Below are positions 38,110-59,128 of a DNA stretch of 64,000 nucleotides, piece after piece. The notes beneath the pieces were generated by a model. It ran no database searches. It had not been told where the DNA came from and worked only from the letters and a program-made list of their open reading frames with translations. Each line of letters starts with the position of its first letter. The stretch's first letter is position 1. Location: sequence record OR844650.1, one strand, 5' to 3'. The translations under genes were made by a program, and so were the position numbers.

Positions 38110-38117
38110 ATATTACC

Positions 38118-38300: not shown

Positions 38301-38310
38301 AGTATTCTCT

Positions 38311-38697: not shown

Positions 38698-38717
38698 AGT
38701 TTTCATATAGTACTCTT

Positions 38718-38903: not shown

Positions 38904-38904
38904 A

Positions 38905-39366: not shown

Positions 39367-39443
39367 ATAGTACATCAGTACTGAAAGGTTGTCAAGGGTT
39401 TTCTTTTTGGGGTAAATATGATATAATGAATAAAGGAGGAAAT
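39367..39443. promoter_or_regulatory. Divergent promoters: leftward sigma70, rightward TAAATA-type
   Basis: Minus TTGACA-17-TACTAT (39367-39395); plus TAAATATGATATAAT then AAGGAGG. Confidence 0.65.
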
Positions 39444-40592
39444 ATGTTACCTTTTGTTAGAATGTTTGATTATGGGAATGAAGCACCTACCAACTCTGGG
39501 CGTTTTAAAATATATTCCAGTGATTCTATGTATCTTCATGATACTTATACTGACAAGTTGTATGCATCTTCTGCGACGAATTGGGGTACTGGTACAGGTG
39601 TAGCATCGAGTAAATTTATTCTTTGTGCGGAGAATGTTAAACGAGTTCTATTGGAAGATAACAGTAGTGATTGTCAATTGTATGAAGAGAAAGGTACTGG
39701 AAAAGTTTTTATCACTGGTAACACGAAGGCATTCACTGGTGTAACTGATAGAAAAACTTTGTGGACGGACTGTACTACGTGGATAACATCAAGTGGTATT
39801 AATGTTTCTGATATAAAATACATGAGTAGTTTTTATGATATGAAGGTGAATTTGATAACAAACGATGGTACATTGTATTGTTGTGGAGCTAACAATATAT
39901 CGAACATATCATCATTTGGTGATGGCACAAACATTAATTCTTTTAACACATTCAAAAGAGTAGATACTATAACTTCGGTTAAAAAGGCAGTTGGTAACAT
40001 TTATTTGCGAGAAGATAATACTTTATGGGGTTGTGGTTTTAACTATTACTACCAGTTGGGCACGGGTAATCAAACTTCTATTACTGGGGTGACGATGATT
40101 TCTTCGGATGTTATAGATTTTAATGTAAGTTATCAGAGTACATTTTTTATCAAATCGGATAATAATTTGTACGCTTGTGGTAAACAGTTCGGTGCACAAT
40201 ATGGGAACGAATTTGGTACAGGTGGTACTTCCTCTTCTACTGATATACAATATAAAACTCCCACATTATTGAGTGCAGGTGTTTATAGTTTATATACTTG
40301 TGTTGGTAACATGGCATCACATATAGTTAAAGGTGATGAAGTACTTTATGCATCTGGAAGCAACTCGTCTGGTCAATTAGGTGTTGGTAATAATAATAAT
40401 CAGTACTCCTATACTCCTTCATATACTTCGTTTAATACCTCTTGTAATTTGGTACGCACCCCATCTGGTTCACTTATACTTACTGATACTGGAAAATTAT
40501 ATTATTGTGGCCTTGCAATAGTAGTAATGGGTGGTATTTCTGGACAGAACGTTCTTAATTATACAGAAGTCGATATGTCATTTTTGCAGTAA
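39444..40592 (+). CDS. MLPF-leader RCC1/BLIP-II-like beta-propeller protein 1
   Basis: GxNxxGQLG-type repeats (CGFNYYYQLGTG, SGSNSSGQLGVG); 382 aa. Confidence 0.85.
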   Translation: MLPFVRMFDYGNEAPTNSGRFKIYSSDSMYLHDTYTDKLYASSATNWGTGTGVASSKFILCAENVKRVLLEDNSSDCQLYEEKGTGKVFITGNTKAFTGVTDRKTLWTDCTTWITSSGINVSDIKYMSSFYDMKVNLITNDGTLYCCGANNISNISSFGDGTNINSFNTFKRVDTITSVKKAVGNIYLREDNTLWGCGFNYYYQLGTGNQTSITGVTMISSDVIDFNVSYQSTFFIKSDNNLYACGKQFGAQYGNEFGTGGTSSSTDIQYKTPTLLSAGVYSLYTCVGNMASHIVKGDEVLYASGSNSSGQLGVGNNNNQYSYTPSYTSFNTSCNLVRTPSGSLILTDTGKLYYCGLAIVVMGGISGQNVLNYTEVDMSFLQ

Positions 40593-40600
40593 ATTAATAT

Positions 40601-40660
40601 GCCAGTACTTGATACTGGCTTTTTTTGATTAAATATAGTATAATGAATAAAGGAGGAAAT
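40601..40660 (+). promoter_or_regulatory. Terminator + TAAATA promoter + RBS cassette
   Basis: GCCAGTA-CTTGA-TACTGGC-T7, TTAAATATAGTATAATGAATAAAGGAGG. Confidence 0.85.
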
Positions 40661-41770
40661 ATGTTACCTTTTGTAAGAATGGTTAAGTACGGGAATATTG
40701 CACCAGTACCGAAAAAAATAAAGAAAGTTATAGCAGGATATGATAATTTATATGTACTATATGGTGATGGTTCGCTATATGGTTGTGGAATCAATAACTA
40801 TCAACAGTTAAATATTGATGGAACTGCTACACAAAATAATTGGGTACTAATTACCAATGGTGTTAGTAATGCATGGGCTGGTGGATACAATATTTTATAT
40901 TTGAAAGAAGATAAATTTATAATGCACGGAACTAATGTCTCATTAGGTTTAGGAAATACTACAATTCCATTAGGTGGAGTAGATGTAACTTCTTCATTCC
41001 CAGATATCTCTAATATTAAAATGATATCCATTGGTTTTGATTCAATGCACTATGTTAGTGCTGATGGTACAACTGTATATGGAAGAGGTATGAACACAAA
41101 TGGTTCTGTTGGTTCAGGTAGTACTTACTCACAGAGTACTTTCACTTCAGTACTGAATAATGGAACTAATCAGGTTATTGATATATTTGGTAACGTTAAT
41201 AATACAGTGCTTCTAACATCGAATGGTGAGCTTCGAGCATGTGGGACAAGTGCTTATGGTTCTATAGGAAATGAAACTGGTAAGTGGACATCGTTTGGTT
41301 TAAAATTATCTGGCACTAAAATAATGGGTGGTAATGGGTATAGTACGCTTGCATATACAAATTCGGGAATGTACCACTCAGGGTGGCAGTTAAATGGGGA
41401 ACTAGGAAATGGTTTAGATACTAACGTACAGGTATATCCATTTCAATTTAACTCTAAAACGATAGATAGCAAGATAGATAAAATTGCCAAATCATCATCT
41501 GGGTCATATGTTAACATGTACTCAACAACAGAAGGAAAGATATATACGACAGGTTCGTTTGGTAAAAACGGGTCAACTACTGCATTGAATTTGTTCACCA
41601 ATACATTAACACTTATAAATTACAATCCAGATACCGCCTCGTTGTATACGTGCACAAACTTCAGTGTTGTGTATGATGGTAATGAAACTATTGCTGTAAG
41701 TGGTAGTCCTACATATGTACCAGGGGGCGTTGCCGCTAATAGATGGACTACAATTCCATTACCCAAGTAA
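40661..41770 (+). CDS. MLPF-leader RCC1-like protein 2
   Basis: 369 aa; close paralogue of 54854-55963. Confidence 0.85.
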   Translation: MLPFVRMVKYGNIAPVPKKIKKVIAGYDNLYVLYGDGSLYGCGINNYQQLNIDGTATQNNWVLITNGVSNAWAGGYNILYLKEDKFIMHGTNVSLGLGNTTIPLGGVDVTSSFPDISNIKMISIGFDSMHYVSADGTTVYGRGMNTNGSVGSGSTYSQSTFTSVLNNGTNQVIDIFGNVNNTVLLTSNGELRACGTSAYGSIGNETGKWTSFGLKLSGTKIMGGNGYSTLAYTNSGMYHSGWQLNGELGNGLDTNVQVYPFQFNSKTIDSKIDKIAKSSSGSYVNMYSTTEGKIYTTGSFGKNGSTTALNLFTNTLTLINYNPDTASLYTCTNFSVVYDGNETIAVSGSPTYVPGGVAANRWTTIPLPK

Positions 41771-41774
41771 TACT

Positions 41775-41841
41775 ATGCCAGTACTTGATGCTGGCATTTC
41801 TTTTTGTATTAAATATAGTATAATGTATAAAGGAGGAAAAT
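41775..41841 (+). promoter_or_regulatory. Terminator + TAAATA promoter + RBS cassette
   Basis: Same repeat. Confidence 0.85.
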
Positions 41842-43023
41842 ATGTTACCTTTTGTTAGAATGTTTGATTATGGGAACGTCGTTGAGCCACCTGTGGGTAC
41901 ACGTTATACCTGTAGTGACTATAGTGCGACTTATAGTTTAATAAAGGATGGTGTGTTATATGTATCTGGGATGAATAACTATTATCAGTTAGGTAATAAC
42001 ACTAACGTAACACGTTACAACGAGTGGTTAAAAGTTCCAGAGACTGATAGTGTTAAGTTTTGTAGTACTGGTTATAGTCAGACAATGTATCTGACTAACA
42101 ATGGTAGGATAATGATAGCAGGTGAAGATCCTACTTCCAGTGCGACTTCGGTAAGTGTAAAGGTTTGGACGGATATAACTTCTAGATTTCGTGCAGTTGA
42201 TACTAAAAAGATTGTTTATATTTCAATAGAACGCTTTGGTGTAATGATGATCATGGAAGATGGTTCAGTATGGGCGTGTGGTGTTGATAATACTGGTTGG
42301 AGTGGACAAGGGAGTAAGACTGTTGGTTTCTTTACTTTCAGACAAATATACACCGGAAGTGCAGGAAGTGCAGTTGCTTGTACTGCTGGTACTGGTACTG
42401 CGAGAATTCTGTTAGCTAATGGAACAATCTTGTCCTCTGGTACTAATACATATCATCAATGTAATGCTAGTACTAATCCGGCTGTTCTAACATTCACTGA
42501 ATCATTCCCTGGGGTTGATCCTTCATTGATATATCAAATCAAGATGTGTAATAACAACTGTATTATATTTTTGAGTGATAAGAGATATTACGGTACTGGC
42601 TGGGGAAGTTTTGGTGCATTGGGTGATGGTGATATTACGGGTTCGAATAATAAATTCTATGCAGGTACATTGTCAGTTGCTCCTAAAAACATGCGTGCTT
42701 ATATGTCGTATCTATGTAGTTCTTCTGGGGATTCTAGTATGTACATAGGCGATGATAATTTCATATACACCTGCGGTTATCGTGGGAGGAACTTAATAAA
42801 TGCCACTACAGATATTGGTACGTTCACGAAATGCATTCAAAGTGCACAAGGATACAAGAATGGACTTATATATAGTGGGAATTATTGTGCTGTAGTTTTT
42901 GATCCAGATTTGGGTTCAGGAATGTCATATGCGGTTTCATCACCAAAATTGAATTCTCCAGCACCACAGGCTAGTGTTCCAGCATTGGGTATGAGTTCGT
43001 TACAATCTATCATTTTACCATAA
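41842..43023 (+). CDS. MLPF-leader RCC1-like protein 3
   Basis: 393 aa; SGMNNYYQLGN. Confidence 0.85.
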   Translation: MLPFVRMFDYGNVVEPPVGTRYTCSDYSATYSLIKDGVLYVSGMNNYYQLGNNTNVTRYNEWLKVPETDSVKFCSTGYSQTMYLTNNGRIMIAGEDPTSSATSVSVKVWTDITSRFRAVDTKKIVYISIERFGVMMIMEDGSVWACGVDNTGWSGQGSKTVGFFTFRQIYTGSAGSAVACTAGTGTARILLANGTILSSGTNTYHQCNASTNPAVLTFTESFPGVDPSLIYQIKMCNNNCIIFLSDKRYYGTGWGSFGALGDGDITGSNNKFYAGTLSVAPKNMRAYMSYLCSSSGDSSMYIGDDNFIYTCGYRGRNLINATTDIGTFTKCIQSAQGYKNGLIYSGNYCAVVFDPDLGSGMSYAVSSPKLNSPAPQASVPALGMSSLQSIILP

Positions 43024-43026
43024 ATG

Positions 43027-43098
43027 ATACCAGTACTGAAATATGTGCTGGTATTTTTTTTGTAAATACATTATAATTATTATATGGAGATTTTAGTT
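43027..43098 (+). promoter_or_regulatory. Divergent terminator + TAAATA promoter cassette
   Basis: ATACCAGTAC/GTGCTGGTAT stem, T tract, TAAATA at 43063. Confidence 0.7.
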
Positions 43099-44229
43099 AT
43101 GTTACCTTTTGTTAGAATGTTTGATTATGGGAATACAGTGGCTGCTCCCACTGGTATAAAGGATTTCCAAGCAAATGGAAGCCACTGTATGGCACTAACA
43201 TATAGTGGTGAGATGTGGGCTTATGGTACAAGTACAAGTGGATCAATGGGAACCGGATTCACGGTGGGTGCTGCTGAGAAGGGTTGGTACAAGTCTAACA
43301 TTAGTAATGTTAAATCATTCAGTTCTAATATGCAGACTAGCACAGTGGCTTTGACAAATGATGATAGAGTGCTAGTTTGTGGCTCAACTAGATTTGACAA
43401 ATTCAGTACTCCAGATATTGCATCATCTAACCTTGATTGGTTGGATGTTACTGATCATATTCCACAGGAAGTTATTGATGCTGGGATGAAGCAAGTTATT
43501 AACCACGCATATTATGTTGCCATTCTTACTGAAAACAATCTATTATATAGTGTGGCATTATCTTTGGGTAATACTAGTACTATAATAGATAGAACATGGC
43601 GAAGAAATACATTTGGTGATATACAAGTTGAACGTGTTGTTTCGTTGACACAAACCCCAAGTGGTCCTTTGTGTATAGTTCAAGATGCTGCCGGATACCA
43701 GTATGGTATTGGATATAATGGTAATAAGATTATTGATAATACTTCCACTAATTCATATTCTGTATATACCAAAATGGGTACACTTCCTTACAATGAATTT
43801 GCCATATCGAATAGCGGGAAATTCAGTTCAGCGGTATTATCAGATGGGAGAAGTGTTTATAGTGGTACATTTCCAAAGTCATTCAATAATAGTTTTGGTT
43901 CATTTTTGAAAGTTGGTGCGGTATCAGATACTGTGTTTGGTTTAGATGCAAAAAATATGCGTGGTCAATATGGTCAAAATCAATTACCAATTGCGTCGGC
44001 TGATAACAATGCAAGTAATGGTGTTGTGAACCTTCGTAATGTTCCAGCGGGAACACAAACGAAAGACATTCGATTTATATGCGGAAATGATGTAAAGAAC
44101 GTTTATATCATATACACAAATGAAGACGGCATTAGCTCATTTTATGGATTGGGACCAAACTTTGATCAAAATTCCTCAGCATATGCACAATTCGTCAAAG
44201 TGGATTTGCCAGGGGCATTATTAAATTAA
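43099..44229 (+). CDS. MLPF-leader RCC1-like protein 4 (divergent)
   Basis: 376 aa; YGTSTSGSMGTG, NMRGQYGQ. Confidence 0.8.
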   Translation: MLPFVRMFDYGNTVAAPTGIKDFQANGSHCMALTYSGEMWAYGTSTSGSMGTGFTVGAAEKGWYKSNISNVKSFSSNMQTSTVALTNDDRVLVCGSTRFDKFSTPDIASSNLDWLDVTDHIPQEVIDAGMKQVINHAYYVAILTENNLLYSVALSLGNTSTIIDRTWRRNTFGDIQVERVVSLTQTPSGPLCIVQDAAGYQYGIGYNGNKIIDNTSTNSYSVYTKMGTLPYNEFAISNSGKFSSAVLSDGRSVYSGTFPKSFNNSFGSFLKVGAVSDTVFGLDAKNMRGQYGQNQLPIASADNNASNGVVNLRNVPAGTQTKDIRFICGNDVKNVYIIYTNEDGISSFYGLGPNFDQNSSAYAQFVKVDLPGALLN

Positions 44230-44239
44230 GGAGAGAAAT

Positions 44240-45382
44240 ATGTTACCTTTTGTGAGGATGGTTAAGTTCGGGAATATTGCACCTGCACAAATAGGTAGAT
44301 ATAAAATATACAGTTCATCTTCTTCAATATTTTTATTGGATACCCAAAAACACAATTTGTATAGTACATCGAACATTAATTATACTAGTGGTACAGGTAA
44401 TGTTGAGCCTAAATTTGTGTTAAGTGCAACTAATGTTAAAAGATTATTACTTTCAGATAATAGTTGTGCAATGCAAATATATGAAGATATGAATGGACGT
44501 GCAGCGATGTGTGGTACAAGAACTGCATATAGTGGGGTTACAAATGATAATGTACTGGTATGGACGGATTGCACTACATGGTTCACAAATGTAGGGTTGA
44601 ATGTATCAGATATTCAGTACATGTCTGGTTTTTATAATTTGAAACTAAACATAGTTATGAATAATGGTGATTTGTGGTGTAGTGGGAAAAACAACACTAC
44701 TACTATGTCATCATTTGGTAATGGCACAAATATCGATTCATTTAATCAGTTTACCAAAATAACAACCATATCAAATGTTATTAAAGCAACCGGAAATATA
44801 TACTTATGTGCAGATAATACTTTATGGGGATGTGGTTTAAACTCTTATTATCAGTTAGGGACAGGTACTCAAACATCCAGTATTAATTTGATTATGATGG
44901 CTTCTAATGTTATCGACTCTAATGTTGGTCTTCAAAATACTTATTACTTGACTAATAATAAAGAACTTTATGGTTGTGGTACACAATTTGGTACAACTTA
45001 CGGGAATGAATTTGGAACAGGAAGGCAGGGAACAGCAATACAGTATAAGACTCCTACTATAATTTTCACAAATGCAGATGGTATGGCTGTTTGTGTCGGT
45101 AATATGTCTACTCATGTTATTCAATATGATAAAGTTTTTAGTTCTGGTAATAATGCCCTTGCACAGTTAGGTGTAGGCAACCGTGACAATGTGTACACAT
45201 ATACACAATCATTTGATAATTTCAAAATGGATTCTTCTATAGTACGTGCAAACGTTGGAACATTGATACTGACAGCAGACAATAAGTTATATTACAGTGG
45301 GCGAAATGATGTTGTTATGGGTGGAACAAGCACACAATACACAATGGTTTTCAGTGAAGTTAATATGTCATTTATACAATGA
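44240..45382 (+). CDS. MLPF-leader RCC1-like protein 5
   Basis: 380 aa; close paralogue of protein 1. Confidence 0.85.
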   Translation: MLPFVRMVKFGNIAPAQIGRYKIYSSSSSIFLLDTQKHNLYSTSNINYTSGTGNVEPKFVLSATNVKRLLLSDNSCAMQIYEDMNGRAAMCGTRTAYSGVTNDNVLVWTDCTTWFTNVGLNVSDIQYMSGFYNLKLNIVMNNGDLWCSGKNNTTTMSSFGNGTNIDSFNQFTKITTISNVIKATGNIYLCADNTLWGCGLNSYYQLGTGTQTSSINLIMMASNVIDSNVGLQNTYYLTNNKELYGCGTQFGTTYGNEFGTGRQGTAIQYKTPTIIFTNADGMAVCVGNMSTHVIQYDKVFSSGNNALAQLGVGNRDNVYTYTQSFDNFKMDSSIVRANVGTLILTADNKLYYSGRNDVVMGGTSTQYTMVFSEVNMSFIQ

Positions 45383-45388
45383 ATTAAT

Positions 45389-45453
45389 GCCAGTACTCAA
45401 GTACTGGCTTTTATTTTTTATTAAATATAGTATAATGAATAAAGGAGGGAAAT
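45389..45453 (+). promoter_or_regulatory. Terminator + TAAATA promoter + RBS cassette
   Basis: GCCAGTAC-TCAA-GTACTGGC. Confidence 0.85.
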
Positions 45454-46656
45454 ATGTTACCTTTTGCTAGAATGGTTAAGTACGCGAATATTGCACCAGG
45501 GCCAGAACCTATAGAGTTCTCAAATGTTTTACAACAACATTATACAAACTGTATGTATCTACATAGCCCAACTAATACTTTATATGGTTATGGTAGTAAT
45601 AACTTTTATCAATTTGGTCTTGGGAATTCAGCAGCAGTTGCGTCATTTACAGTACTTGCAACGCGATGTGCAGCCTTTTGGCTTGGTGTTCAAGGTTCAT
45701 TGATGATTGATTTGGATAATAAAATATACTACACTGGGTCGGTTGGTGCATTTTCTGATTATGGAGATGCAACACCTGTTAATGGTTATTTGAGAACATG
45801 GACTGATGTTACTGCTTCATTTAATAAAATTGGTGTTATGGCTAATATGATCAAGTGTGTGTATATAGGTGAAAGTACTAGAATATTATTAACCGATGGT
45901 AGAGTAATTGCGTGTGGAAGAAATACCAATGGTGAATGTGGGTCTGGTAATCAAAATTCCATACCTACACTAACAGTTATGACTAATATGGGTGAAGTTA
46001 CACATATGGCATGTTCATTACAAGGAACGCACTATATTAAATCAAATAAAAAGGCATGGTTTTGTGGTAAGGATAACTTCGGTGAAAGTGGTTGTGGTGC
46101 TAGTTCTATGATATATTTGAACAAATATGTGATGAGTGATGTCGAACATATTAGTACTACATACGATGTTACTTGGTGGTTTACTACTGGTGGGCCTGTA
46201 TATTATAGCGGGGCTAACAGTACTGGACAAGCTGGTAATGGTACGACTACATCGGTAAATCAGCTAACACCAATTAGGAACACATCGGTCACGGTTGATG
46301 TAAGTAAGTACAGTACTTTTATTTGTCCAAGTAATATGGGAAATGCATCAATTGGTGCACCTATGGCACAATACGCACCATATGTTAGAAGTAGTGGTGC
46401 TAACGGATACGGTCAAGAAGGTAATGGAACTAATACATTAGTTAGGACTTGGAATATTTTTAATCTTAATGCAATAAGTGGTGGTTATGACAATGTTCTT
46501 ATGGCATCTAAAGATTGGAGCAGAACCATAATAATTACTAAAGATTATAAATTATATGCATGTGGTGGCTGGAATGGTAATGGTGGTAGATTGCCTGATG
46601 GCACTTATAGTATTACTACACTAACATTAATGCCAACGCAGTTATGGCAACAATAG
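45454..46656 (+). CDS. MLPF-leader RCC1-like protein 6
   Basis: 400 aa; CGRNTNGECGSG, SGANSTGQAGNG. Confidence 0.85.
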   Translation: MLPFARMVKYANIAPGPEPIEFSNVLQQHYTNCMYLHSPTNTLYGYGSNNFYQFGLGNSAAVASFTVLATRCAAFWLGVQGSLMIDLDNKIYYTGSVGAFSDYGDATPVNGYLRTWTDVTASFNKIGVMANMIKCVYIGESTRILLTDGRVIACGRNTNGECGSGNQNSIPTLTVMTNMGEVTHMACSLQGTHYIKSNKKAWFCGKDNFGESGCGASSMIYLNKYVMSDVEHISTTYDVTWWFTTGGPVYYSGANSTGQAGNGTTTSVNQLTPIRNTSVTVDVSKYSTFICPSNMGNASIGAPMAQYAPYVRSSGANGYGQEGNGTNTLVRTWNIFNLNAISGGYDNVLMASKDWSRTIIITKDYKLYACGGWNGNGGRLPDGTYSITTLTLMPTQLWQQ

Positions 46657-46664
46657 GAGGAATT

Positions 46665-47774: not shown

Positions 47775-47780
47775 CATAAT

Positions 47781-47844
47781 GCCAGTACTCAGTACTGGCT
47801 TTTCTTTTTTATTAAATATAGTATAATGAATAAAGGAGGAATAT
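47781..47844 (+). promoter_or_regulatory. Terminator + TAAATA promoter + RBS cassette
   Basis: Same repeat. Confidence 0.85.
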
Positions 47845-49024
47845 ATGTTACCTTTTGTTAGATTATTTGATTATGGGAATATTGCCCCTGTCAAAGATAC
47901 TGTTGTTAAAATTAATAGTGATGAAAATTCAATAAGCGTATTATACAGTGATGGGTCATTATATATGCGTGGACGGAAACCAATCAGCAAAAATGGGAGT
48001 TACTGGTTCATCTTTTTTGGATAGATGGGTTTTATGTCCTTATAGTGTTGATGATTTCTGGAGTTCTCTATATTGTACTATAATTAGAACAAAACAAGGG
48101 GAATTGTACTATAGTGGGACTAACTCAGTTTTTGGTATATCATCTTCGGTTTCAACATGGACTCGTTGTGAATCATATTTTGGATCTATTTCTCCGAGTT
48201 CAATAAAAGATATAAAAATAACATCATCAACCGGAACTAACAATTCCATGTTAATACTAACAAGTGACGGGCAGTTATATGGTATAGGCATGAATGGTGC
48301 AAGTGAATTGGGTACAGCAACTGCACCAATTACATCTCCACTCTTAATTGACACTAGTGTATCTGCAATTGCATCTAGTGAAATGAGCAGAAACTTTCAC
48401 TATATAAAAGATGGTATATATTATCGTTGTGGTGAGAATACTTTTTATCAATTAGGAACCGGTGATAATAAGCCTATTACTAGTTTTACTGCATTGAATC
48501 TTGGTAGTTCTCATGTAATTGCAGTACAAGCTACACGATGGGTAACACGTTTGATTGTTCAAAGTAGTACATCTGCTTTGTCTTTAATGGCGGCTGGTTG
48601 GAACACACAGTTGACTATAGGTGGTTCTGAAAATACTGGTATAATAAGGTCATCATTTACTACCAATCCCTATACCGATATAACAGCAAATTCATTCGAT
48701 AAACTTTCACCAGTATCCTATGTTAATGCAATAAAATCCAGTACTAACATTATTAATACGAATGGTAAGGGATATAATTCTAATGGTGCTGGTTTAGGCC
48801 GCAACGCAGTCTCTGGGAATTATGGTTCAATATTACCAATAGAATTCTTTGATGATAGTGTTGACTTATCACATGTTGAGTGGTTTGGTACGATTGGTAA
48901 TGGTTCAGTATCGGTAGTTAGTATAGGTGAGGATTTATACTGGACTGGAAACCCTGGGTATTTTACTGAACAAGGTGAGACTGGATATATATATAAATTC
49001 AAAAAGTGCGTTCCTTTTAGATAA
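47845..49024 (+). pseudogene. MLPF-leader RCC1-like protein 8, +1 frameshift
   Basis: ATG 47845 reads MLPFVRLFDYGN and stops at 48024; deleting one A at 47977-47979 gives MRGRNQSAKMG and a 392 aa product paralogous to protein 15. Confidence 0.75.
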
Positions 49025-49029
49025 ACACA

Positions 49030-49094
49030 ATGCCAGTACTTGAGTACTGGCATTCTTTTTGATTAAATATAGTATAATGAATAAAGGAGGAAAT
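49030..49094 (+). promoter_or_regulatory. Terminator + TAAATA promoter + RBS cassette
   Basis: Same repeat. Confidence 0.85.
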
Positions 49095-50249
49095 ATGTTA
49101 CCTTTTGTTAGAATGTTTGATTATGGGAATGAAGCACCTGTACCAGTTGGTATAAAGATGGTAAAAGTTTTACAGAATAATGTGTTTATTTTATTAGAAG
49201 ACGGAAGATTATATGGCAGAGGGCATAATTTTTACTATCAATTAGGTACTGGTAGTAGTTCTCCTACTATAGTTGAAGAGTGGGTTTTATGTTTAACTGA
49301 TGTAAAGGAATTTTGGACTACTGGTGATACACAAGGAATATTAGTACGTAAAAATGATGGCACATGGTGGAGTACTGGTACTCAAATCTATCGTGGTGTT
49401 AATACTACTTATCGTGTATGGACAGAAATACTTGGTATTTTTAATAATGTGAATGACACATATAGTAAAATAGTTATAGGAAACGGCGTTACATTATTAT
49501 TAACAATAGATAATAAATTATATAAGATGGGTGACAATAACAACGGTGAAGTTTTTACTGGGGCTGTTGGACAAAGAGTATCAGTACTGACATTGACACC
49601 TGAAGTTGATGTTAAAGATATTGGTGTAACCGCGAATAATGCTTCATTTGTATTATACAATGATGGGACATTAAAGTACAGTGGGAATAAATCTAGTATT
49701 GGTTCGACTGGTACGACTAGTACAACTACCACATTGACTACTGTTACTACTGGAGTATTACAGATAAATTCAGAAAATGCATATAGTGCTAATTACGTAT
49801 TAAAGAGTGATGGGCTATATGTATTCGGTTCACAAATAGATGGACAGTTGGGTGATGGCACTGATGGCACTATTAACAGTCTTAGAACAATCACAAAGAT
49901 ACCAGCTTCTAGTATTCCTAGTACTGCGATTGATTACATAGGTGGTTCTAATTATGAAGCACACGTTAGAGCAGGTGGTATATGGTATTTCGCTGGGCGT
50001 GGAAACGCTTCTGGAGATGGAATAACGAACTCTAATGTTATTAAAACATGGCGTGCATGTACTAATATAACTGAACCAGTTCCATATGATAAAATGACAC
50101 ATGGTTATATGATAACATTCATGTTAAAAAACGGTGAATTATATGGTTCAGGGAATGGTAGTAGAACTGCTGGTATGGGTACAATTCCGTATGAAGAAGA
50201 AAATGCCGGAAATACAGGATTATTTAAAAAAATAGTTACACCGAGTTAA
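49095..50249 (+). CDS. MLPF-leader RCC1-like protein 9
   Basis: 384 aa; GRGHNFYYQLGTG. Confidence 0.85.
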   Translation: MLPFVRMFDYGNEAPVPVGIKMVKVLQNNVFILLEDGRLYGRGHNFYYQLGTGSSSPTIVEEWVLCLTDVKEFWTTGDTQGILVRKNDGTWWSTGTQIYRGVNTTYRVWTEILGIFNNVNDTYSKIVIGNGVTLLLTIDNKLYKMGDNNNGEVFTGAVGQRVSVLTLTPEVDVKDIGVTANNASFVLYNDGTLKYSGNKSSIGSTGTTSTTTTLTTVTTGVLQINSENAYSANYVLKSDGLYVFGSQIDGQLGDGTDGTINSLRTITKIPASSIPSTAIDYIGGSNYEAHVRAGGIWYFAGRGNASGDGITNSNVIKTWRACTNITEPVPYDKMTHGYMITFMLKNGELYGSGNGSRTAGMGTIPYEEENAGNTGLFKKIVTPS

Positions 50250-50256
50250 AATTAAA

Positions 50257-50325
50257 ATGCCAGTACTCAAGTACTGGCATTTCTTTTTTTGATTAAATAT
50301 AGTATAATGAATAAAGGAGGAAAAT
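50257..50325 (+). promoter_or_regulatory. Terminator + TAAATA promoter + RBS cassette
   Basis: Same repeat. Confidence 0.85.
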
Positions 50326-51516
50326 ATGTTACCTTTTGTTAGATTGTTTGATTATGGGAATATCACACCTGAACCTCTTCTAATTAAGAAAATAATACCA
50401 ACTGATACTGATGTGGTTGTACTTTATACTGACGGTCAACTATACGCACGAGGAAATAATAGTTATGGGAAGTTCGGTCGCGGAAATAATAATGCAGTAA
50501 GGTCGTGGACATTAATTAGAGAAAATGTCAAAGATTGCTGGATGACACAAGGAACTTTGTTAGTTCAAGATAAGGACTTAAATTATTTTTATTGTGGATA
50601 TGGTGGTCATATTGGTTTAGAAACTAGTACTACATCATTTTTAAGTTATAACCAATATATTGAAAATTTGTACACACAAAGTTCAGGTACTTCAATTAAA
50701 CAGATGTATGCAGGTACTACGTGGTTTACTTTCTTAATGGATAATAATACAATATGGAGTACTGGTTGGAGTGGGGCTAGACAATTCGCTGATGGTACTG
50801 GTAGTACTCAACAAATAACAGATGGATCATTTGTAAAAGCTGTCACGCCTAATGTTGATATTGCACGAATACAGTCAACAAATAGCTGTGTAATGTTTTA
50901 TGATACACAAAATAATTTATATATTGGTGGTAGTACATCAGGTATAAGTACTACTGATACATGGACTCCATACAATCAATATACTTTATATCAGCCAAGT
51001 ACAACATATACAAAAACATTACAATATGTTGTATGTACAATTGGTGCAGTCAGTGCTTTAGTGGAGAATCCAAGTACAGGAGCACGTCAGTTCCTAGTGG
51101 GTGGGAACGCCAATAATGGGGCATGGGGTAATAACACTACGTCTAGTACAGCACGAGCAGTATTAGGAAATAATAGTACAACCTTACCACCCGGTACTTT
51201 GTATTCAATTCATACTGGATACCCAGCACAATCTAGTATACTAGTTACGAGTTCTGGTGTATATGCAACAGGTTTAAATGCGAGTAGTTATGCTGGTTCA
51301 TTGGGTGTTGGTTCTAATGTTACCATTGGTAAATTTACTGCATGTCCATTGCCGTCAGAAATAACATATTCTATGTATGATAAAATAAAAATATATCGAG
51401 GGTCGTTACGTACTTTCCTAACTGCTGATATGAAAAATATATATTCAACCGGAACTTATGATGATGGTGGTCCTAGTACAAATAGATATGTACTTGATAC
51501 TCCAAGACAACTATAA
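50326..51516 (+). CDS. MLPF-leader RCC1-like protein 10
   Basis: 396 aa; RGNNSYGKFGRG. Confidence 0.85.
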   Translation: MLPFVRLFDYGNITPEPLLIKKIIPTDTDVVVLYTDGQLYARGNNSYGKFGRGNNNAVRSWTLIRENVKDCWMTQGTLLVQDKDLNYFYCGYGGHIGLETSTTSFLSYNQYIENLYTQSSGTSIKQMYAGTTWFTFLMDNNTIWSTGWSGARQFADGTGSTQQITDGSFVKAVTPNVDIARIQSTNSCVMFYDTQNNLYIGGSTSGISTTDTWTPYNQYTLYQPSTTYTKTLQYVVCTIGAVSALVENPSTGARQFLVGGNANNGAWGNNTTSSTARAVLGNNSTTLPPGTLYSIHTGYPAQSSILVTSSGVYATGLNASSYAGSLGVGSNVTIGKFTACPLPSEITYSMYDKIKIYRGSLRTFLTADMKNIYSTGTYDDGGPSTNRYVLDTPRQL

Positions 51517-51523
51517 CAATAAT

Positions 51524-51589
51524 GCCAGTACTTTGTACTGGCTTTTATTTTTTTTGATTAAATATAGTATAATGAATAAAGGAGGAAAT
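51524..51589 (+). promoter_or_regulatory. Terminator + TAAATA promoter + RBS cassette
   Basis: Same repeat. Confidence 0.85.
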
Positions 51590-52777
51590 ATGTTACCTTT
51601 TGCAAGAATGGTTAAGTACGGGAATAAAGTCATTCCATATGTTCCCAATTTTACTAAATTAGTCACCCCAGCAGTTGGTTATTCATTTACATGCACAATG
51701 CTGCTTGATGTAAATGGATCAGTGTGGGCTATGGGTCTTCAGAATGCAGGAATTTTTGGGTTAGGTAATACTACACAGGTTACTGAATGGACAAAAATAT
51801 ATAACAATGTTAAAGATTTTTGGTGCAGCACGGGGAATGGTTTTTGTCTAATACGAACAAATGATGATAGATTCTTTTATAGTGGTTTAGATAAATGGCT
51901 AGGTAACAATACAACAAATACTGTAACAACATTCACTGAATGTACGAGTTATTTTACACAATTTGGTATTTCAAAAATCAAAGAGATATATGTAGGTCTT
52001 GATTATGCTTTGATTTTAGGTACTGATAATAGTTTATATTTGTTAGGTGATAATAAAAATTCAAAGTTTGGTTTAAACACTGCATCATATTTTAATAAAT
52101 TTACATTTTTAGTCGATAATGTTAAAAAATTCTGTTCATCCATCACACCATCTAACTGGATTATTAAACTAGATAATACAATATGGCGTACTGGGACAAC
52201 ATCTCATGGAACGTTGGGAAATGGAGTTCAAAACACATATATATTTCCTTGGGTTCAATATAAGGGCACACCTGTTACCGAAGCTATAGACGTTTTTTGT
52301 AGTGCGAGTTATATTGGTATTATAACTAAAGGTACACCAGAATCATGTCCTATGTATACACTAGGCTATCAAGCTGATGGTCAGTTGGGTAATAATACTA
52401 CAGCAGGGGGTTATAAATTAACGCCAACATTATCGAAAACCGTTCCAGATGATAGTGAATTCATTCGAATTGAAAACATCTCATCCCGTGGTCTGGTATA
52501 TTATAGCTCTGGTAAAATTTATAGTACTGGTTATAATAACAATGGTCAGTTGGCAAATAATACTAAAATCAATTCTGGTTCATTTGTTGAAGCAATTTTA
52601 CCTAATGGTGTTAACTTTAAGAAAAGTGAATCACTTGTAGCTGGGAACGATGCAACGTTGTATATGTACATTAATAATAAATTATACTACGCGGGGAAAT
52701 CTCCTGATAATATTTCAGCAAGTAGTTCGTCTGTCATGAAAGAATTCCCACTTCCAACAATTAATGCCAGTACTTGA
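51590..52777 (+). CDS. MLPF-leader RCC1-like protein 11
   Basis: 395 aa; TGYNNNGQLAN; stop codon lies inside the next terminator stem. Confidence 0.85.
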   Translation: MLPFARMVKYGNKVIPYVPNFTKLVTPAVGYSFTCTMLLDVNGSVWAMGLQNAGIFGLGNTTQVTEWTKIYNNVKDFWCSTGNGFCLIRTNDDRFFYSGLDKWLGNNTTNTVTTFTECTSYFTQFGISKIKEIYVGLDYALILGTDNSLYLLGDNKNSKFGLNTASYFNKFTFLVDNVKKFCSSITPSNWIIKLDNTIWRTGTTSHGTLGNGVQNTYIFPWVQYKGTPVTEAIDVFCSASYIGIITKGTPESCPMYTLGYQADGQLGNNTTAGGYKLTPTLSKTVPDDSEFIRIENISSRGLVYYSSGKIYSTGYNNNGQLANNTKINSGSFVEAILPNGVNFKKSESLVAGNDATLYMYINNKLYYAGKSPDNISASSSSVMKEFPLPTINAST

Positions 52778-52830
52778 TACTGGCTTTCTTATTTGTATTA
52801 AATATAGTATAATGAATAAGGAGGGGAATT
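52766..52830 (+). promoter_or_regulatory. Terminator + TAAATA promoter + RBS cassette
   Basis: Identical to 53980-54044. Confidence 0.85.
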
Positions 52831-53973
52831 ATGTTACCTTTTGCAAGAATGGTTAAGTACGGGAATATAGCACCAGTTCCAGTAGTTCCTACAATAAAAG
52901 ATTTTAAGATTGGCTTTTCACATGAAGTGTTATTGGACAGTGCAGGTGATGCATGGGGTATTGGATACAATACAGATGGGCAGTTAGGCTTTTTGGATGC
53001 AAATACAAATTCACTAGGTGCGTGGTCTAAGATATATACTGATGTTCGATTAATTGGAGTTACTGCTAGATATACAGTGGTAGTTACTAATAATAATAGA
53101 ATACTATATGCAGGAAATAACTTAATTTCTAGTACTACTACTCTTGGGTGGACCGATATAACTGCCAGTATGGGTCCGGTTGCGGTGGATAGCATCGATG
53201 CATTATATTGCACAGATGGTATGATGCATATTAAAACTTCAGATGGTTCTTTATATGCATATGGTCGTAACATGAACGCAAACAGTGGTGTTACTGGCGG
53301 TGTTATTAGTGTTGCAACTAAGGTTAATTTGCCTTCTGCTGTAAATGACATGCGATATACGTTTAGTTATGGTTCAGTACTATGTCGCTTGGATACAACT
53401 TCTATATACGCATGGGGACGAAACACAAATGGTGAATTAGGCCAGGGTAATACAACAGCTATCGTTACACCAAAACTATTGTCTGGTGCTTCTATTGCAA
53501 TGGGTACTTCGTATAATGCTACTGCAATTGTTTCTGGTTCTGCATTGTTGCTTACATGTGGTGGACAAAGCAGTGGGCAGTTAGGTAATGGTATTACAAC
53601 TGATGGTAATGTATACACCTTTGGTGTCAGGACATACCCAGGCGATCTTAATACAATAAGAAGTCCAGTGGATTGCAGTACAACTTACACCTCTGCATTT
53701 ATGAGTCCAGATGGTATATATTACACTGGTGCTAACCGAAGTATGTTTGGTGGTATTAGTGGTGCTTCTACCGTTGCTGTATATACTAAATGTAGTGATT
53801 TACCAATAACATATTCTAATATAATTCAGTGGAGTAGTGGTACTATAGGTGGTGCTATATGTAGTAGTACAGAGTTATACCAATGTGGTATAGGTAGATA
53901 CATTGCTGGTGATGGTGCGAGCACAACCAGGTATGGATTTAGGAAGACACCATTACCTTGGGATACTTATTGA
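52831..53973 (+). CDS. MLPF-leader RCC1-like protein 12
   Basis: 380 aa; WGRNTNGELGQG. Confidence 0.85.
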   Translation: MLPFARMVKYGNIAPVPVVPTIKDFKIGFSHEVLLDSAGDAWGIGYNTDGQLGFLDANTNSLGAWSKIYTDVRLIGVTARYTVVVTNNNRILYAGNNLISSTTTLGWTDITASMGPVAVDSIDALYCTDGMMHIKTSDGSLYAYGRNMNANSGVTGGVISVATKVNLPSAVNDMRYTFSYGSVLCRLDTTSIYAWGRNTNGELGQGNTTAIVTPKLLSGASIAMGTSYNATAIVSGSALLLTCGGQSSGQLGNGITTDGNVYTFGVRTYPGDLNTIRSPVDCSTTYTSAFMSPDGIYYTGANRSMFGGISGASTVAVYTKCSDLPITYSNIIQWSSGTIGGAICSSTELYQCGIGRYIAGDGASTTRYGFRKTPLPWDTY

Positions 53974-53979
53974 CATTAC

Positions 53980-54044
53980 GCCAGTACTTGATACTGGCTT
54001 TCTTATTTGTATTAAATATAGTATAATGAATAAGGAGGGGAATT
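53980..54044 (+). promoter_or_regulatory. Terminator + TAAATA promoter + RBS cassette
   Basis: Same repeat. Confidence 0.85.
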
Positions 54045-54782
54045 ATGTTACCTTTTGGAAGAATGGTTAAGTACGGGAATAAAATTGAATATAAGCCACA
54101 TGGTGAACAATTAATCACGACAATAGGAACAACACAATTTACAGTTCCTGCTGGCGTTACCGAAATATCAGTATGTGTTATTTCGCCGGGTGGTCAACGT
54201 GGTGCTGGTGGCGGCTTATCGTGGCGTAATAATATTCCGGTTACTAGTGGTGAGTACTTAAGTGTTTCTCTTACACATCCCAACACTACTACACCAGTTG
54301 AAAACGGTTTATATCGTGGAACTGAAAAACTATGTGTTAGCTTCACTGGTGAATATAGGGTTGGTGGACTAGGTGGGAAAGCTGCTAACGCTATTAATGA
54401 TGGTGGTGGTAATGGGGGCAACGCTGGTGTAAGTGGTGGTGCAGTCATTGGTGGTGGTGCTGGTGGCTACACTGGTAAAGGTGGTAACGGAGATGCAATC
54501 ACTGGTGAAAATGGTGCTGGGGGCGGCGGTGGTGGTGGTGCATTCTATAATACCTCGTTCATTGGTACGGGTGGTGGTACTGGTATCATTGTTCAAGGTG
54601 CTAATGGTATTGGCGGTAGATACGATGGTTCATATAATGGTGGTGCTGGTAGTGGTGGTGCTGGTAAGATGTATGGTGGTGGTGGTAGTATATGGGATAA
54701 TTTTTCTTATACGGCTGCTGGTGGTGGTGCTGTGCGAATAATATGGGGACGTGGGAGATATTATCCTAACAATTCAGTCTAA
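54045..54782 (+). CDS. MLPF-leader glycine-rich protein (virion fibre-type Gly-rich domain), array member 13
   Basis: MLPFGRMVKYGN leader, then GTTQFTVPAGVTEISVCVI..GG and GGGAVRIIWG typical of phage Gly-rich structural domains. Confidence 0.8.
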   Translation: MLPFGRMVKYGNKIEYKPHGEQLITTIGTTQFTVPAGVTEISVCVISPGGQRGAGGGLSWRNNIPVTSGEYLSVSLTHPNTTTPVENGLYRGTEKLCVSFTGEYRVGGLGGKAANAINDGGGNGGNAGVSGGAVIGGGAGGYTGKGGNGDAITGENGAGGGGGGGAFYNTSFIGTGGGTGIIVQGANGIGGRYDGSYNGGAGSGGAGKMYGGGGSIWDNFSYTAAGGGAVRIIWGRGRYYPNNSV

Positions 54783-54789
54783 AATATAG

Positions 54790-54853
54790 GCCAGTACTTG
54801 ATACTGGCTTTCTTATTTGTATTAAATATAGTATAATGAATAAGGAGGGAAAT
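54790..54853 (+). promoter_or_regulatory. Terminator + TAAATA promoter + RBS cassette
   Basis: Same repeat. Confidence 0.85.
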
Positions 54854-55963
54854 ATGTTACCTTTTGTTAGAATGATTAAGTACGGAAATATTGCACCTGA
54901 AGCACCAAAGATAAAGAAAGTACTGTGCGGTCTTGATAATTTGTACGTCCTCTATGGCGATGGCTCACTTTATGGTTGTGGGGTTAATACGTATTTGCAG
55001 TTAAACGTTGAAAATACAGCAACAAGAAATACTTGGATATTAATTTCAGAAGGTGTTACTGATGCATGGGCTGGTGCGTACAATATTCTTTATCTCAAGG
55101 GTGAAGAATTCATAATGCATGGAGTTACCACACAATTAGGCACAGGAAATACTATGATTCCGTTGGGTGGTTTGAATGTTACTTCTTCATTTCCACATAT
55201 ATCTAATATTAAAATGATATCAATTGGTGCAGATACAATGCACTACGTTGATGCTAGTGGTTCGATTGTTTATGGTAGAGGCATGAATGGTAACTATTCA
55301 CTCGGTGGTGGGTATTCCACGGCTCAGAGTACTTTTGTTTCAGTTATTAATACCGGAGCTAATACAGTTCTTGATATATTGGGTACACAGAATAACACAT
55401 TAATATTAACATCAAATAATGAACTTCTCGGTTGCGGGAGCAGTGGGTATGGTTCACTTGGCGTAAGTCCAGGACAGTATACTACACTAGTAAGCAGGTT
55501 AACAAGTGTTAAACTATTTGGTGGTAACAGTACTGGTACTCTTGCTTATTCAGCCAGCAATATATACAACGCAGGTTGGCAGTATATTGGTCAACTTGGT
55601 AACGGTATTACAACGAACACACAAGTATATCCATTTGCATTTAACTCCACTACTATTGATAGTAAGATACATAAAATATCAAAATCAAGTGCGACTTCAT
55701 ATGTTAATATGTACGCAACAACCGAAGGAAAGATATACAGTACTGGTGAATTTGGTAGAAATGGTTCGGGAGGTGGTTTGAGTAGATTCACCAATACACT
55801 AACTTTAGATAATTACAACCCAGAAAAATCATCATTATACACATGTGCACATTTTAGTATAGTATTTGATGGTAATAATCAAATTTATGCTTGTGGTTCT
55901 TTTTTGTATGTACCAGGTCCTATTACCACGAACTCATGGTCTGCAATTACAATGCCGAAATAA
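54854..55963 (+). CDS. MLPF-leader RCC1-like protein 14
   Basis: 369 aa; close paralogue of protein 2. Confidence 0.85.
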   Translation: MLPFVRMIKYGNIAPEAPKIKKVLCGLDNLYVLYGDGSLYGCGVNTYLQLNVENTATRNTWILISEGVTDAWAGAYNILYLKGEEFIMHGVTTQLGTGNTMIPLGGLNVTSSFPHISNIKMISIGADTMHYVDASGSIVYGRGMNGNYSLGGGYSTAQSTFVSVINTGANTVLDILGTQNNTLILTSNNELLGCGSSGYGSLGVSPGQYTTLVSRLTSVKLFGGNSTGTLAYSASNIYNAGWQYIGQLGNGITTNTQVYPFAFNSTTIDSKIHKISKSSATSYVNMYATTEGKIYSTGEFGRNGSGGGLSRFTNTLTLDNYNPEKSSLYTCAHFSIVFDGNNQIYACGSFLYVPGPITTNSWSAITMPK

Positions 55964-55977
55964 TACTATAAAACTAT

Positions 55978-56041
55978 GCCAGTACTTTGTACTGGCTTTC
56001 TTATTTGTATTAAATATAGTATAATGAATAAAGGAGGAATT
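55978..56041 (+). promoter_or_regulatory. Terminator + TAAATA promoter + RBS cassette
   Basis: Same repeat. Confidence 0.85.
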
Positions 56042-57211
56042 ATGTTACCTTTTGGAAGAATGTTCAAGTACGGAAATATTAAACCAACTCTTCCTGAAAT
56101 AAAGAAATTGGATGGTAGTCAATTACATGTCGGATTACTTTATAGTACAGGGAATATGTACATGCGTGGTTCTGGTTCGAACTATAAATTAGGTACAGGG
56201 GATGCTAGTGATGTATTAGGTGGTTGGGTACATGTACCCTATGAAGTTGATGATTTTTGGGCGTGTGTATCCGGTACATTAATAAAGACTGTTGATAATA
56301 AATTATATTGTGCAGGTCTATACATGGGTGGATATTTTGGGGCTAGTGGTTCATATGTTAACTGGACTGAAGTAACTTCATTATTTGTAGGTATTGACGT
56401 GTCGCAAATAAAGAATATAGAATTTACGTCAGCGGGTACTTCCGGTAGTACACTAATATTGATGTTAGATGGTCGTTTATATGGGTTCGGTATGAACAGT
56501 AGATCTGAGTTAGGTGTTAATAACAAAGTTGTATCTCCCATTCTCATAGATACTGAGGTAAGTGCAATAGGAGCACATAAGTTAGGGGGTTCATCGTTCC
56601 ATTATATAAAAGGCGGTAAGTACTACAGATGTGGAACATCGGTTGGTAGTAATATTGGAAGTTCTTCTTTAACTACTTTTACGGTATTGAGTATTCCTGA
56701 TAACGTTATATCTATGCAAATATTATATGACAACGTACAGTTATTATGTTTAGGAAGTTCTGGATATAGTATCTATATGGCTGGTTCTAATGATTATGGT
56801 GGAAGAGGTGGTGGTGGTTCTACTGTTTACACTACATTCAGGAAAATAGATCTTACAGGATTTGGTGTTGCTCCCAGTGAAATACTATTTGAAAATGCCG
56901 GGAATGGTTATGTTAATATATCAACTGATAGTACTGGGGTATATACATGTGGTGGTGGGGCTGGTGTTAATGGTTTAGGTAGACCAACTGATGTGATACC
57001 AAGTTCACAGTTGGGTTCGGTTCAGTTCAGTACTGGAGTAGAACCATCAAATATAAGTCGTGTGTATTCACAGAGTTCGAGTTCTGTTATATATTGTATA
57101 GTTAATAATGAATTGTACTGGGCTGGTAGTAATTCATATTTTACTGATCAAACCACAAATACTGGTACACAATTTTCATTTATTAAGATGAAGGATATGC
57201 CTTCTGCTTAG
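56042..57211 (+). CDS. MLPF-leader RCC1-like protein 15
   Basis: 389 aa; FGMNSRSELG; paralogue of protein 8. Confidence 0.85.
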   Translation: MLPFGRMFKYGNIKPTLPEIKKLDGSQLHVGLLYSTGNMYMRGSGSNYKLGTGDASDVLGGWVHVPYEVDDFWACVSGTLIKTVDNKLYCAGLYMGGYFGASGSYVNWTEVTSLFVGIDVSQIKNIEFTSAGTSGSTLILMLDGRLYGFGMNSRSELGVNNKVVSPILIDTEVSAIGAHKLGGSSFHYIKGGKYYRCGTSVGSNIGSSSLTTFTVLSIPDNVISMQILYDNVQLLCLGSSGYSIYMAGSNDYGGRGGGGSTVYTTFRKIDLTGFGVAPSEILFENAGNGYVNISTDSTGVYTCGGGAGVNGLGRPTDVIPSSQLGSVQFSTGVEPSNISRVYSQSSSSVIYCIVNNELYWAGSNSYFTDQTTNTGTQFSFIKMKDMPSA

Positions 57212-57216
57212 ATTTT

Positions 57217-57282
57217 ATGCCAGTGCCTTGTACTGGCATTTTTTGTCCTAAATATAATAACGATTTACATTTGGAGGATACA
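57217..57282 (+). promoter_or_regulatory. Divergent terminator + TAAATA promoter cassette
   Basis: ATGCCAGTG-CCT-TGTACTGGCAT stem, TAAATA at 57249. Confidence 0.7.
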
Positions 57283-57706
57283 ATGCTACCCTTTCGAAGA
57301 ATTATCACATCATCAAAAAAGAACATACAACCTTCTGTTACAAAAATAGCTTCATCTGATACGACAGTTTTTGCCCTTATGTCAGATGGTACGTTGTACA
57401 GTAGAGAATCTCAAGAGTTTGGGTTATTCATATTTTTCTAATCATATTATAACTTCATTGGGTGTTTACGCAACTGGTAATAACACAGGCGATAACGCAG
57501 GTCAATTGGGTATAGGTACACAAACAGATGTGTCGGCCTATACCAAATGTGTACTACCAATAGAGATGAATATGAATAACGTATATGTTACAGCAACTTT
57601 ATACAGAACTTACTTAACCGATGGTATACAAATTTACAGTACTGGACAATATATTACAGACGGTGGAGTTGCCAGTACTGTATTTGTTAAAGATTCACCA
57701 TTTTAG
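57283..57706 (+). pseudogene. Internally deleted MLPF/RCC1 relic (member 16)
   Basis: MLPFRR... N-terminal about 40 aa joined out of frame to about 95 aa resembling the C-terminus of protein 10. Confidence 0.7.
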
Positions 57707-58763: not shown

Positions 58764-58764
58764 A

Positions 58765-59127: not shown

Positions 59128-59128
59128 A

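Follow-up and report, generated by a model that had tools for sequence, protein, structure and literature searches.

A 12-residue N-terminal leader on unrelated proteins of Rak2-like jumbo phages, a candidate virion-incorporation tag

Why should a row of proteins whose bodies have diverged widely, together with one whose body is unrelated to the others, begin with nearly the same twelve residues? This question is raised by an array of 16 genes on the plus strand of the window analysed here, i.e., a stretch of 64,000 nucleotides from sequence record OR844650.1. The products of these genes start with a peptide of the form MLPFxRMxxYGN (x, variable position), referred to as the leader, and a reading of the letters alone (the sequence-only reading) had proposed that it is a portable sorting or docking tag. 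The answer reached here, which as a whole we hold to be moderately likely, is that, in Rak2-like jumbo myophages, the leader together with a proline-containing linker of about seven residues would serve as a virion-incorporation tag independent of its cargo, and that the binding modules so attached are probably displayed on the outer surface of the virion.

The leader and the proteins that carry it

A six-frame scan of the window disclosed 16 leaders, all on the plus strand, in genes spanning positions 39444-57706; in 16 out of 16 cases the leader runs from the first codon of an open reading frame (ORF). Thirteen of the array genes are intact and encode RCC1-like proteins of 369-400 amino acids (aa), one encodes a Gly-rich protein of 245 aa, and two are broken. 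The recurrence of the leader is far above chance, and the feature is statistically overwhelming. Megablast matched the region 39426-44229 to Escherichia phage ECO103 4-12-1 (352 kb) at 99.7% identity and also, at 93-99%, to 36 jumbo phages of Escherichia and Salmonella belonging to the 121Q/PBECO4/phAPEC6 group; on these matches, the window DNA is assigned to a jumbo coliphage of the genus Asteriusvirus (121Q/PBECO4/phAPEC6-type). In the 352 kb genome, scanned piecewise in eight pieces, no copy of the strict leader pattern lies outside the array. The relatives' annotation of the array region is a series of "regulator of chromosome condensation" genes.

Among the 13 intact RCC1-like paralogs, the identity between leaders is 58-100% (median 83%), versus 13-63% (median 20%) between bodies, with just 2 of the 78 pairs of bodies exceeding 40%. 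The sequence-only reading had described a conserved leader in front of bodies that are barely alignable; the first half of this statement holds, while the second is slightly overstated, since the bodies do align as RCC1 repeats (PF25390/PF00415/PF13540). Pfam matches to the RCC1-repeat signature were obtained for all the bodies tested, above cut-off in most of them for RCC1/RCC1_2 and below the curated cut-off for PF25390. The proline-containing linker that it had reported is confirmed: of the 16 window copies, 11 have Pro at position 15 and 9 have it at position 17. When 119 distinct N-termini are considered, M1 and P3 are present in 100% of them, F4 in 98%, Y10 and N12 in 97%, G11 in 92%, and R6 in 91%, followed by L2 (81%, with I in 18%), M7 (71%), and P15 (71%); positions 5, 8, and 9 are free to vary. 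Besides the Arg-6 type of leader, a Pro-5/Ile-6 type occurs in L012 and CBB. A profile of leader and linker, searched against 1.84 billion representative proteins, retrieved 74 proteins at E<=1e-3, nearly all matching from residue 1.

As judged from the sequences of these proteins, the leader heads at least five unrelated cargo classes across the Rak2-like jumbo-phage group, in several genera. RCC1-like propellers are tagged in the window phage, phAPEC6, WPEC3, and L012, the latter being a 350 kb metagenomic phage with four tagged genes, RCC1-like plus Laminin_G_3. Tagged Kelch propellers are encoded by Pectobacterium phage CBB (CBB_550, 552, and 554) and by Escherichia phages BF17, vB_Ec-M-J, and A4, and tagged ConA-like Laminin_G_3 domains by CBB (CBB_548 and CBB_551) and L012. 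A family of 220 residues (phrog_6011, "virion structural protein") bears the leader in CBB_549 and 553, in GAP32, and in Erwinia, Serratia, and Salmonella jumbo phages. CBB, which belongs to the genus Mimasvirus, harbors nine tagged genes, two of which (CBB_536 and CBB_537) are members of a further family. The fusion to an unrelated Gly-rich domain (54045-54782), already pointed out from the letters alone, is borne out, since the protein has the same leader and no RCC1 signal; in homologs that are 55-58% identical to the window protein, the tag is kept in lineage-matched variants.

Two further searches reached less far. An exact-DNA scan of IMG/VR with the leader codons, too strict for other genera, returned one Asteriusvirus genome and chance matches to short ORFs, and a word-indexed search with residues 1-40 of the Gly-rich protein returned only the protein itself and a fragment.

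The array genes, each starting with the first codon of its leader, are the following:

39444..40592, plus strand: leader gene 1, 382 aa; leader, Pro linker, and RCC1-like propeller; body 95% identical to phAPEC6 gp549, detected in virions by mass spectrometry (MS)
40661..41770, plus strand: leader gene 2, RCC1-like, 369 aa
41842..43023, plus strand: leader gene 3, RCC1-like, 393 aa
43099..44229, plus strand: leader gene 4, RCC1-like, 376 aa
44240..45382, plus strand: leader gene 5, RCC1-like, 380 aa; without promoter cassette, directly 3' of gene 4
45454..46656, plus strand: leader gene 6, RCC1-like, 400 aa
46665..47774, plus strand: leader gene 7, RCC1-like, 369 aa; without promoter cassette, directly 3' of gene 6
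47845..49024, plus strand: leader gene 8, broken; one frameshift separates a short leader ORF from a leaderless RCC1-like body ORF
49095..50249, plus strand: leader gene 9, RCC1-like, 384 aa; propeller chosen for the AlphaFold2 model
50326..51516, plus strand: leader gene 10, RCC1-like, 396 aa
51590..52777, plus strand: leader gene 11, RCC1-like, 395 aa
52831..53973, plus strand: leader gene 12, RCC1-like, 380 aa; body 84% identical to phAPEC6 gp005 (MS-detected)
54045..54782, plus strand: leader gene 13, leader on a Gly-rich domain protein, 245 aa; phrog_4474, PF21722 in relatives
54854..55963, plus strand: leader gene 14, RCC1-like, 369 aa; body identical to phAPEC6 gp009 (MS-detected)
56042..57211, plus strand: leader gene 15, RCC1-like, 389 aa; body 99% identical to phAPEC6 gp010 (MS-detected)
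57283..57706, plus strand: leader gene 16, a decayed remnant with one frameshift; its RCC1-like body has undergone at least one large deletion

The broken state of gene 8 is common to phages WPEC3 and ECO103 4-12-1, and the decayed state of gene 16 is common to phAPEC6. The degenerate leader of gene 16 retains positions 1-4 and 6 and has lost positions 10-12. The gene content of the array is strongly different between close relatives.

The RCC1-like bodies are bona fide propellers. Their profiles match HERC1, UVR8, RPGR, and RCC1 in the PDB (E about 1e-38 to 1e-24), and the AlphaFold2 model of gene 9, built from an alignment of 30 sequences, is a seven-bladed propeller with a mean predicted local distance difference test (pLDDT) of 88 and a predicted template modelling score of 0.87. 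In Foldseek, the template modelling (TM) score of this model was 0.6-0.75 against UVR8, RPGR, HERC, and RCC1, and 0.73-0.75 against UVR8 itself. The array proteins therefore share the seven-bladed body of RCC1/RLD proteins (UVR8, HERC, RPGR); unlike the latter, they give no sign of chromatin or DNA binding, and their database names have been transferred from the fold. A role in DNA condensation was considered and rejected, because the tagged proteins are not basic (isoelectric point, pI, 5.1-9.0; net charge -5 to +4.5) and the name "chromosome condensation" derives from the fold. Cellular RCC1-like relatives bear type IX secretion system (T9SS), Big, SLH, and FN3 modules.

The Gly-rich protein has no Pfam match itself; it matches phrog_4474 (E=1e-68), and PF21722 is carried by its homologs. 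Its AlphaFold2 model is confident from residue 20 (mean pLDDT 93) and resembles Gly-rich domain proteins of BFVD with a TM score up to 0.75; the neighbours in BFVD include baseplate and minor-tail proteins, and the best ones in the PDB, at low TM score, are the cyanophage Pam3 fibre and the Bxb1 tail-tip protein. Sequence and fold searches of the PDB disclosed no solved phage structure holding the tagged proteins.

These models bear on the possibility that the leader is the closing "velcro" strand of the propeller, and its copy on the Gly-rich protein a recombination accident. Most cargos are indeed propellers (RCC1-like, Kelch), a fold often closed by an N-terminal strand. However, in the gene 9 model the first strand comprises residues 20-26; the pLDDT is 52 for residues 1-10, where no strand is predicted, 73 for residues 11-20, and above 90 from about residue 20. 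The sequence-only reading had itself named a predicted closing strand, along with fusions left out of virions, as the outcome that would overturn its proposal, and no such strand was predicted. Moreover, the tag also heads ConA-like, Gly-rich, and phrog_6011 proteins, it is modelled as coil (pLDDT 48) in the Gly-rich protein, and it is kept in Gly-rich homologs sharing only 55-58% identity with that of the window. The closing-strand idea was rejected on both predicted structures, and we regard it as extremely improbable. As far as prediction can tell, the leader would be unstructured and independent of the cargo fold.

Two side observations concern the proteins that carry the leader or resemble its carriers. 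In phage WPEC3, a tagged protein of 449 residues (35873-37222), annotated as "regulator of chromosome condensation", has no Pfam match at E<=1; its sequence may represent an additional type of cargo or else a propeller that has diverged very far. Distant Gly-rich homologs from other phage groups (P0005-P0036) begin with a different N-terminal motif, of the type Met, Leu/Ile, Glu, Leu/Met, Leu; two adjacent genes for such homologs are located just upstream of the terminase gene in a 150 kb phage-like contig (L024:7176-8744). The different motif may be an analogous leader in another clade.

Peptide and DNA layers of leader conservation

A layer that the sequence-only reading had missed lies in the DNA: the leader conservation it had observed is in part a DNA-level phenomenon, involving a repeated intergenic cassette and the swapping of leader haplotypes. 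A representative of this cassette is:

40601..40660, plus strand: intergenic cassette with the terminator of the upstream gene, an AT-rich box, and a Shine-Dalgarno sequence, ending at the ATG

Near-identical copies of the cassette stand upstream of most array genes, in the order GC-rich hairpin and T-run, AT-rich box with a -10-like hexamer, and strong Shine-Dalgarno sequence. The promoter/Shine-Dalgarno box was found at 39413, 40630, 41810, 45422, 47813, 49064, 50294, 51559, 52799, 54013, 54823, and 56011, that is, 12 matches observed versus 0 expected, and terminator-like sites are 27 versus 7.5 expected. In a sigma-70 scan the cassette did not stand out (101 sites versus 98.5 expected), and its -10-like hexamer has no -35 partner at normal spacing. 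Since terminator, promoter-like box, and Shine-Dalgarno sequence are repeated together, the array genes are probably largely separate transcription units.

The uniformity extends into the coding sequence. The first 12 nucleotides are identical in 15 window copies, the leader codons hardly vary, that for Gly at position 11 included, and two leader variants at positions 8-10 move as linked codon blocks. When the window genes are compared with their phAPEC6 orthologs, whose bodies are 90-100% identical, the leaders differ at 1-4 of the 12 positions, and all the phAPEC6 leaders are of one variant type. Orthologs with nearly the same body and different leaders suggest that the leader region has been exchanged between paralogs in a genome. 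At the sequence level, the pattern is suggestive of concerted evolution, or gene conversion, acting only on the 5' ends of the array genes; part of the leader uniformity within a genome is, on the same grounds, attributable to concerted evolution. The repeated cassette plus leader would promote such swapping of variants between paralogs.

It might be asked, then, whether the peptide has any function at all. The first 36 nucleotides could be just the end of a terminator-promoter-ribosome-binding-site-initiation cassette, kept uniform by gene conversion or by the needs of translation initiation. The 12-fold repetition of the cassette, the identical first 12 nucleotides, the near-fixed codons, and the swapped leader variants between orthologs are all in line with this explanation. 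It is nonetheless largely refuted by CBB and L012, in which the tagged genes are arranged head-to-tail in operons, with unrelated upstream DNA and no cassette, and different codons stand for the conserved leader residues (Pro with three or four, Phe with both, and Leu with several of its codons). Since the leader is kept there without a cassette and through synonymous codon changes, it is the peptide itself that is under selection. In the same direction, the decayed copy at 57283 retains leader positions 2 and 3 via synonymous codon changes, and divergent Gly-rich homologs keep lineage-matched leader variants. A purely DNA-level explanation was rejected on the basis of CBB and L012, and a leader whose peptide is functionless appears very improbable.

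Tagged proteins in virions and the candidate role of the leader

The virion evidence comes from the published proteomes of related phages rather than from the window phage, and it was obtained by mapping the published tables to genes. In phAPEC6, 8 of the 11 annotated tagged proteins (gp003, 005, 006, 007, 009, 010, 549, and 551) were found in virions by MS, versus 62 of 551 genome-wide (P=2e-6; PMC7247149). In CBB, the tagged proteins found were 7 of 9 (CBB_536, 537, 548, 549, 551, 552, and 553), versus 55 of 554 genome-wide (P=2e-6; PMC5259590). The RCC1-like GAP32_001 has also been reported as a structural protein (PMC5259590). The shared N-terminus is mentioned neither in PMC7247149 nor in PMC5259590, and a full-text literature search with leader strings did not find it either; as far as searched, the leader is undescribed. 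As a side observation, three tagged ORFs of phAPEC6 (L010:2434, 6063, 7325), including the Gly-rich one, are unannotated in the phAPEC6 record, and therefore they could not be found in its virion proteome.

The portable sorting or docking tag of the sequence-only reading is thus upheld in some respects: the leader is portable in nature, being found on five cargo classes, it lies outside both modelled folds, and the tagged proteins are strongly enriched in virion proteomes; the part of the leader itself in docking or loading is a putative one. We consider it quite likely that the tag mediates virion incorporation and, if this is so, reasonably probable that the site of incorporation is external. 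According to the proposed mechanism, the leader would anchor the protein as an unstructured N-terminal segment, its free N-terminus and its invariant positions (1, 3, 4, 6, and 10-12) being suited to a docking site that all tagged proteins would have in common on the particle. The beta-rich ligand-binding domains that follow the leader (RCC1-like, Kelch, ConA-like lectin, Gly-rich fibre-type, and the 220-residue structural family) would be interchangeable. The candidate sites are the hexon-centre decoration and the capsid and sheath fibres of 121Q, phAPEC6, and CBB, and a single phage would thus present several kinds of binding module, in a mixture that varies from strain to strain.

Several observations favour a location outside the particle. 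The cargo folds are of the lectin/adhesin type, and cellular RCC1-like relatives bear surface modules. The predicted structure of the Gly-rich protein has fibre, tail-tip, baseplate, and minor-tail neighbours, and the pI of the tagged proteins is near neutral. Lastly, 121Q and phAPEC6 have a decoration of unassigned identity at each hexon centre and long fibres on both capsid and sheath.

Several points weigh against a tag for external display. CBB has hairs of 119 nm, which globular domains of 25-42 kDa alone cannot build; no hairs have been reported for GAP32, although it too encodes tagged proteins; and the related phage phiKp24 has been modelled without any decoration protein. A low pLDDT denotes the absence of a predicted fold and not a docking function. 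Because the first 12 nucleotides are identical and the synonymous sites near-fixed, conservation within this genome is inflated by gene conversion. Some tagged proteins went undetected (2 of 9 in CBB, 3 of 11 in phAPEC6), the peptide counts are low (1-8), and detection by MS could be due to the cargos or to co-purification. Finally, a T4-like head, whose gp23-family capsid protein is processed, makes an internal, scaffold-directed route mechanistically available.

This last point leads to the T4 precedent invoked by the sequence-only reading. In T4, the capsid-targeting sequence (CTS) of IPI, IPII, IPIII, and Alt is, like the leader, a short peptide at the extreme N-terminus, common to unrelated proteins of a variable locus and tied to presence in the particle, and the phage lineage studied here has a T4-type head. 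By analogy, the leader might target the prohead scaffolding core, so that the tagged proteins would lie inside the capsid as inner-body or ejected proteins, where they might constitute a variable arsenal of binders against host defences. T4 internal proteins share this logic, i.e., a short common N-terminal peptide on diverse proteins and a hypervariable locus (PMC3012670). The T4-like head with its processed gp23-family protein, the presence of tagged proteins in virions, the strong variation of array gene content between close relatives, and the inner-body rod of phAPEC6, for which its authors proposed the RCC1-like proteins as candidates, all fit an internal location.

On the other hand, a T4-type protease site is not evident, since no acidic residue is conserved after the leader in the 119 N-termini (Glu at position 13 in 8% of them; positions 13-16 mostly Ile, Val, Ala, or Pro). 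No T4 internal protein was among the matches when the array's own proteins were used as queries in Pfam, PHROGs, PDB sequence, and Foldseek searches. In contrast to small basic proteins, the cargos are large (25-42 kDa), stable, near-neutral, beta-rich binding domains of the lectin/adhesin type; their relatives occur in surface proteins and phage fibres, and they seem poorly suited to DNA condensation or to passage through the tail tube. The T4 analogy is therefore retained for the shared N-terminal peptide on diverse proteins present in virions and not for the protease site, the homology, or the nature of the cargo, and internal packaging is judged rather unlikely.

A different objection is that virion association is set elsewhere in the protein, and that the leader is recognised by a non-virion partner, such as an assembly chaperone or a modifying enzyme, or acts as an oligomerisation hub, with, for instance, three leaders at the centre of the "triskelion" observed on phAPEC6 capsids. 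The leader is strictly N-terminal and unstructured and is followed by a flexible linker, and the capsid fibres of phAPEC6 look dimeric or trimeric, in keeping with this objection. Yet the five cargo classes share nothing else that might explain their joint presence in virions, and an oligomerisation hub would be compatible with a docking anchor; a leader without a direct role in incorporation is accordingly held to be doubtful, even more so than the internal route.

The preferred reading, a virion-incorporation tag that probably acts outside, can be set beside three other known systems. Encapsulins have a shell of HK97 fold, to which cargos of many kinds can be docked by nothing more than a terminal peptide of about 10-15 residues and a flexible linker rich in Pro and Gly. 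The arrangement is alike, i.e., a short unstructured tag, a linker, and any fold; however, most encapsulin cargo-loading peptides are located at the C-terminus, they bind inside the shell, and they have no sequence relationship to the leader. No encapsulin shell gene is present in the leader locus, whose context is that of a tailed jumbo phage.

Rak2-like phages are known for multi-fibre systems, and the branched receptor-binding proteins (tailspike proteins, TSPs, of CBA120; G7C; RaK2/K64-1/phiKp24) likewise combine a conserved N-terminus with a variable C-terminal host-binding module and shared attachment sites. Their anchors, in contrast, are folded, comprise roughly 100 residues or more, and are borne by trimeric beta-helix depolymerases, whereas here 12 residues predicted to be unstructured (pLDDT about 50) precede monomer-like propeller or lectin domains whose fold begins at about residue 20. 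T4 Hoc consists of Ig-like domains and binds the capsid through a folded domain, all in a single protein. It resembles the tagged proteins in being an accessory protein that displays binding-type domains at the hexon centre, exactly where 121Q and phAPEC6 show unassigned density, and differs in that here about 14 paralogs with a peptide anchor would compete, at a hexon-centre location that is itself inferred.

A bolder scenario, advanced only tentatively, is that some 14 binding modules compete for one class of sites through the 12-residue anchor, making each virion a mosaic, strain-specific adhesin coat, or, if the proteins are internal, that each virion delivers, along with its DNA, a packaged set of large binders of the propeller type, the jumbo-phage counterpart of the T4 internal proteins. 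In either version, the leader would serve as a natural and minimal tag, defined in sequence and kept across several genera, for loading an HK97-fold particle. Already on the preferred reading, the leader would be a minimal natural tag by which a whole phage clade loads unrelated domains onto the particle. One of the largest paralog arrays in jumbo coliphages, now labelled "chromosome condensation" after its fold, would acquire a function, and the decoration and fibre densities still unassigned in 121Q-type virions would be linked to it. What the hexon-centre and sheath appendages consist of becomes directly testable, and the leader bears on how phages diversify the domains they display.

Neighbourhood of the array

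The leader array is flanked by two other families of tandem paralogs, both on the minus strand:

34550-39341, minus strand: tandem array of about 20 small paralogs (59-81 aa) that have a hydrophobic C-terminal end in common, transcribed in divergent orientation to the leader array
58392-61172, minus strand: tandem array of eight small paralogous membrane proteins (104-141 aa)

The former are annotated only as hypothetical in WPEC3. An array similar to the latter (CBB_539-546) is located between the two leader-gene clusters of CBB, which makes the neighbourhood syntenic across genera. As for base composition, the GC content of the region 12000-34000 is 0.38-0.40, versus 0.31-0.35 in the rest of the window, and the GC skew is negative; at about 34 kb, the point at which the genes change direction, it reverses sign.

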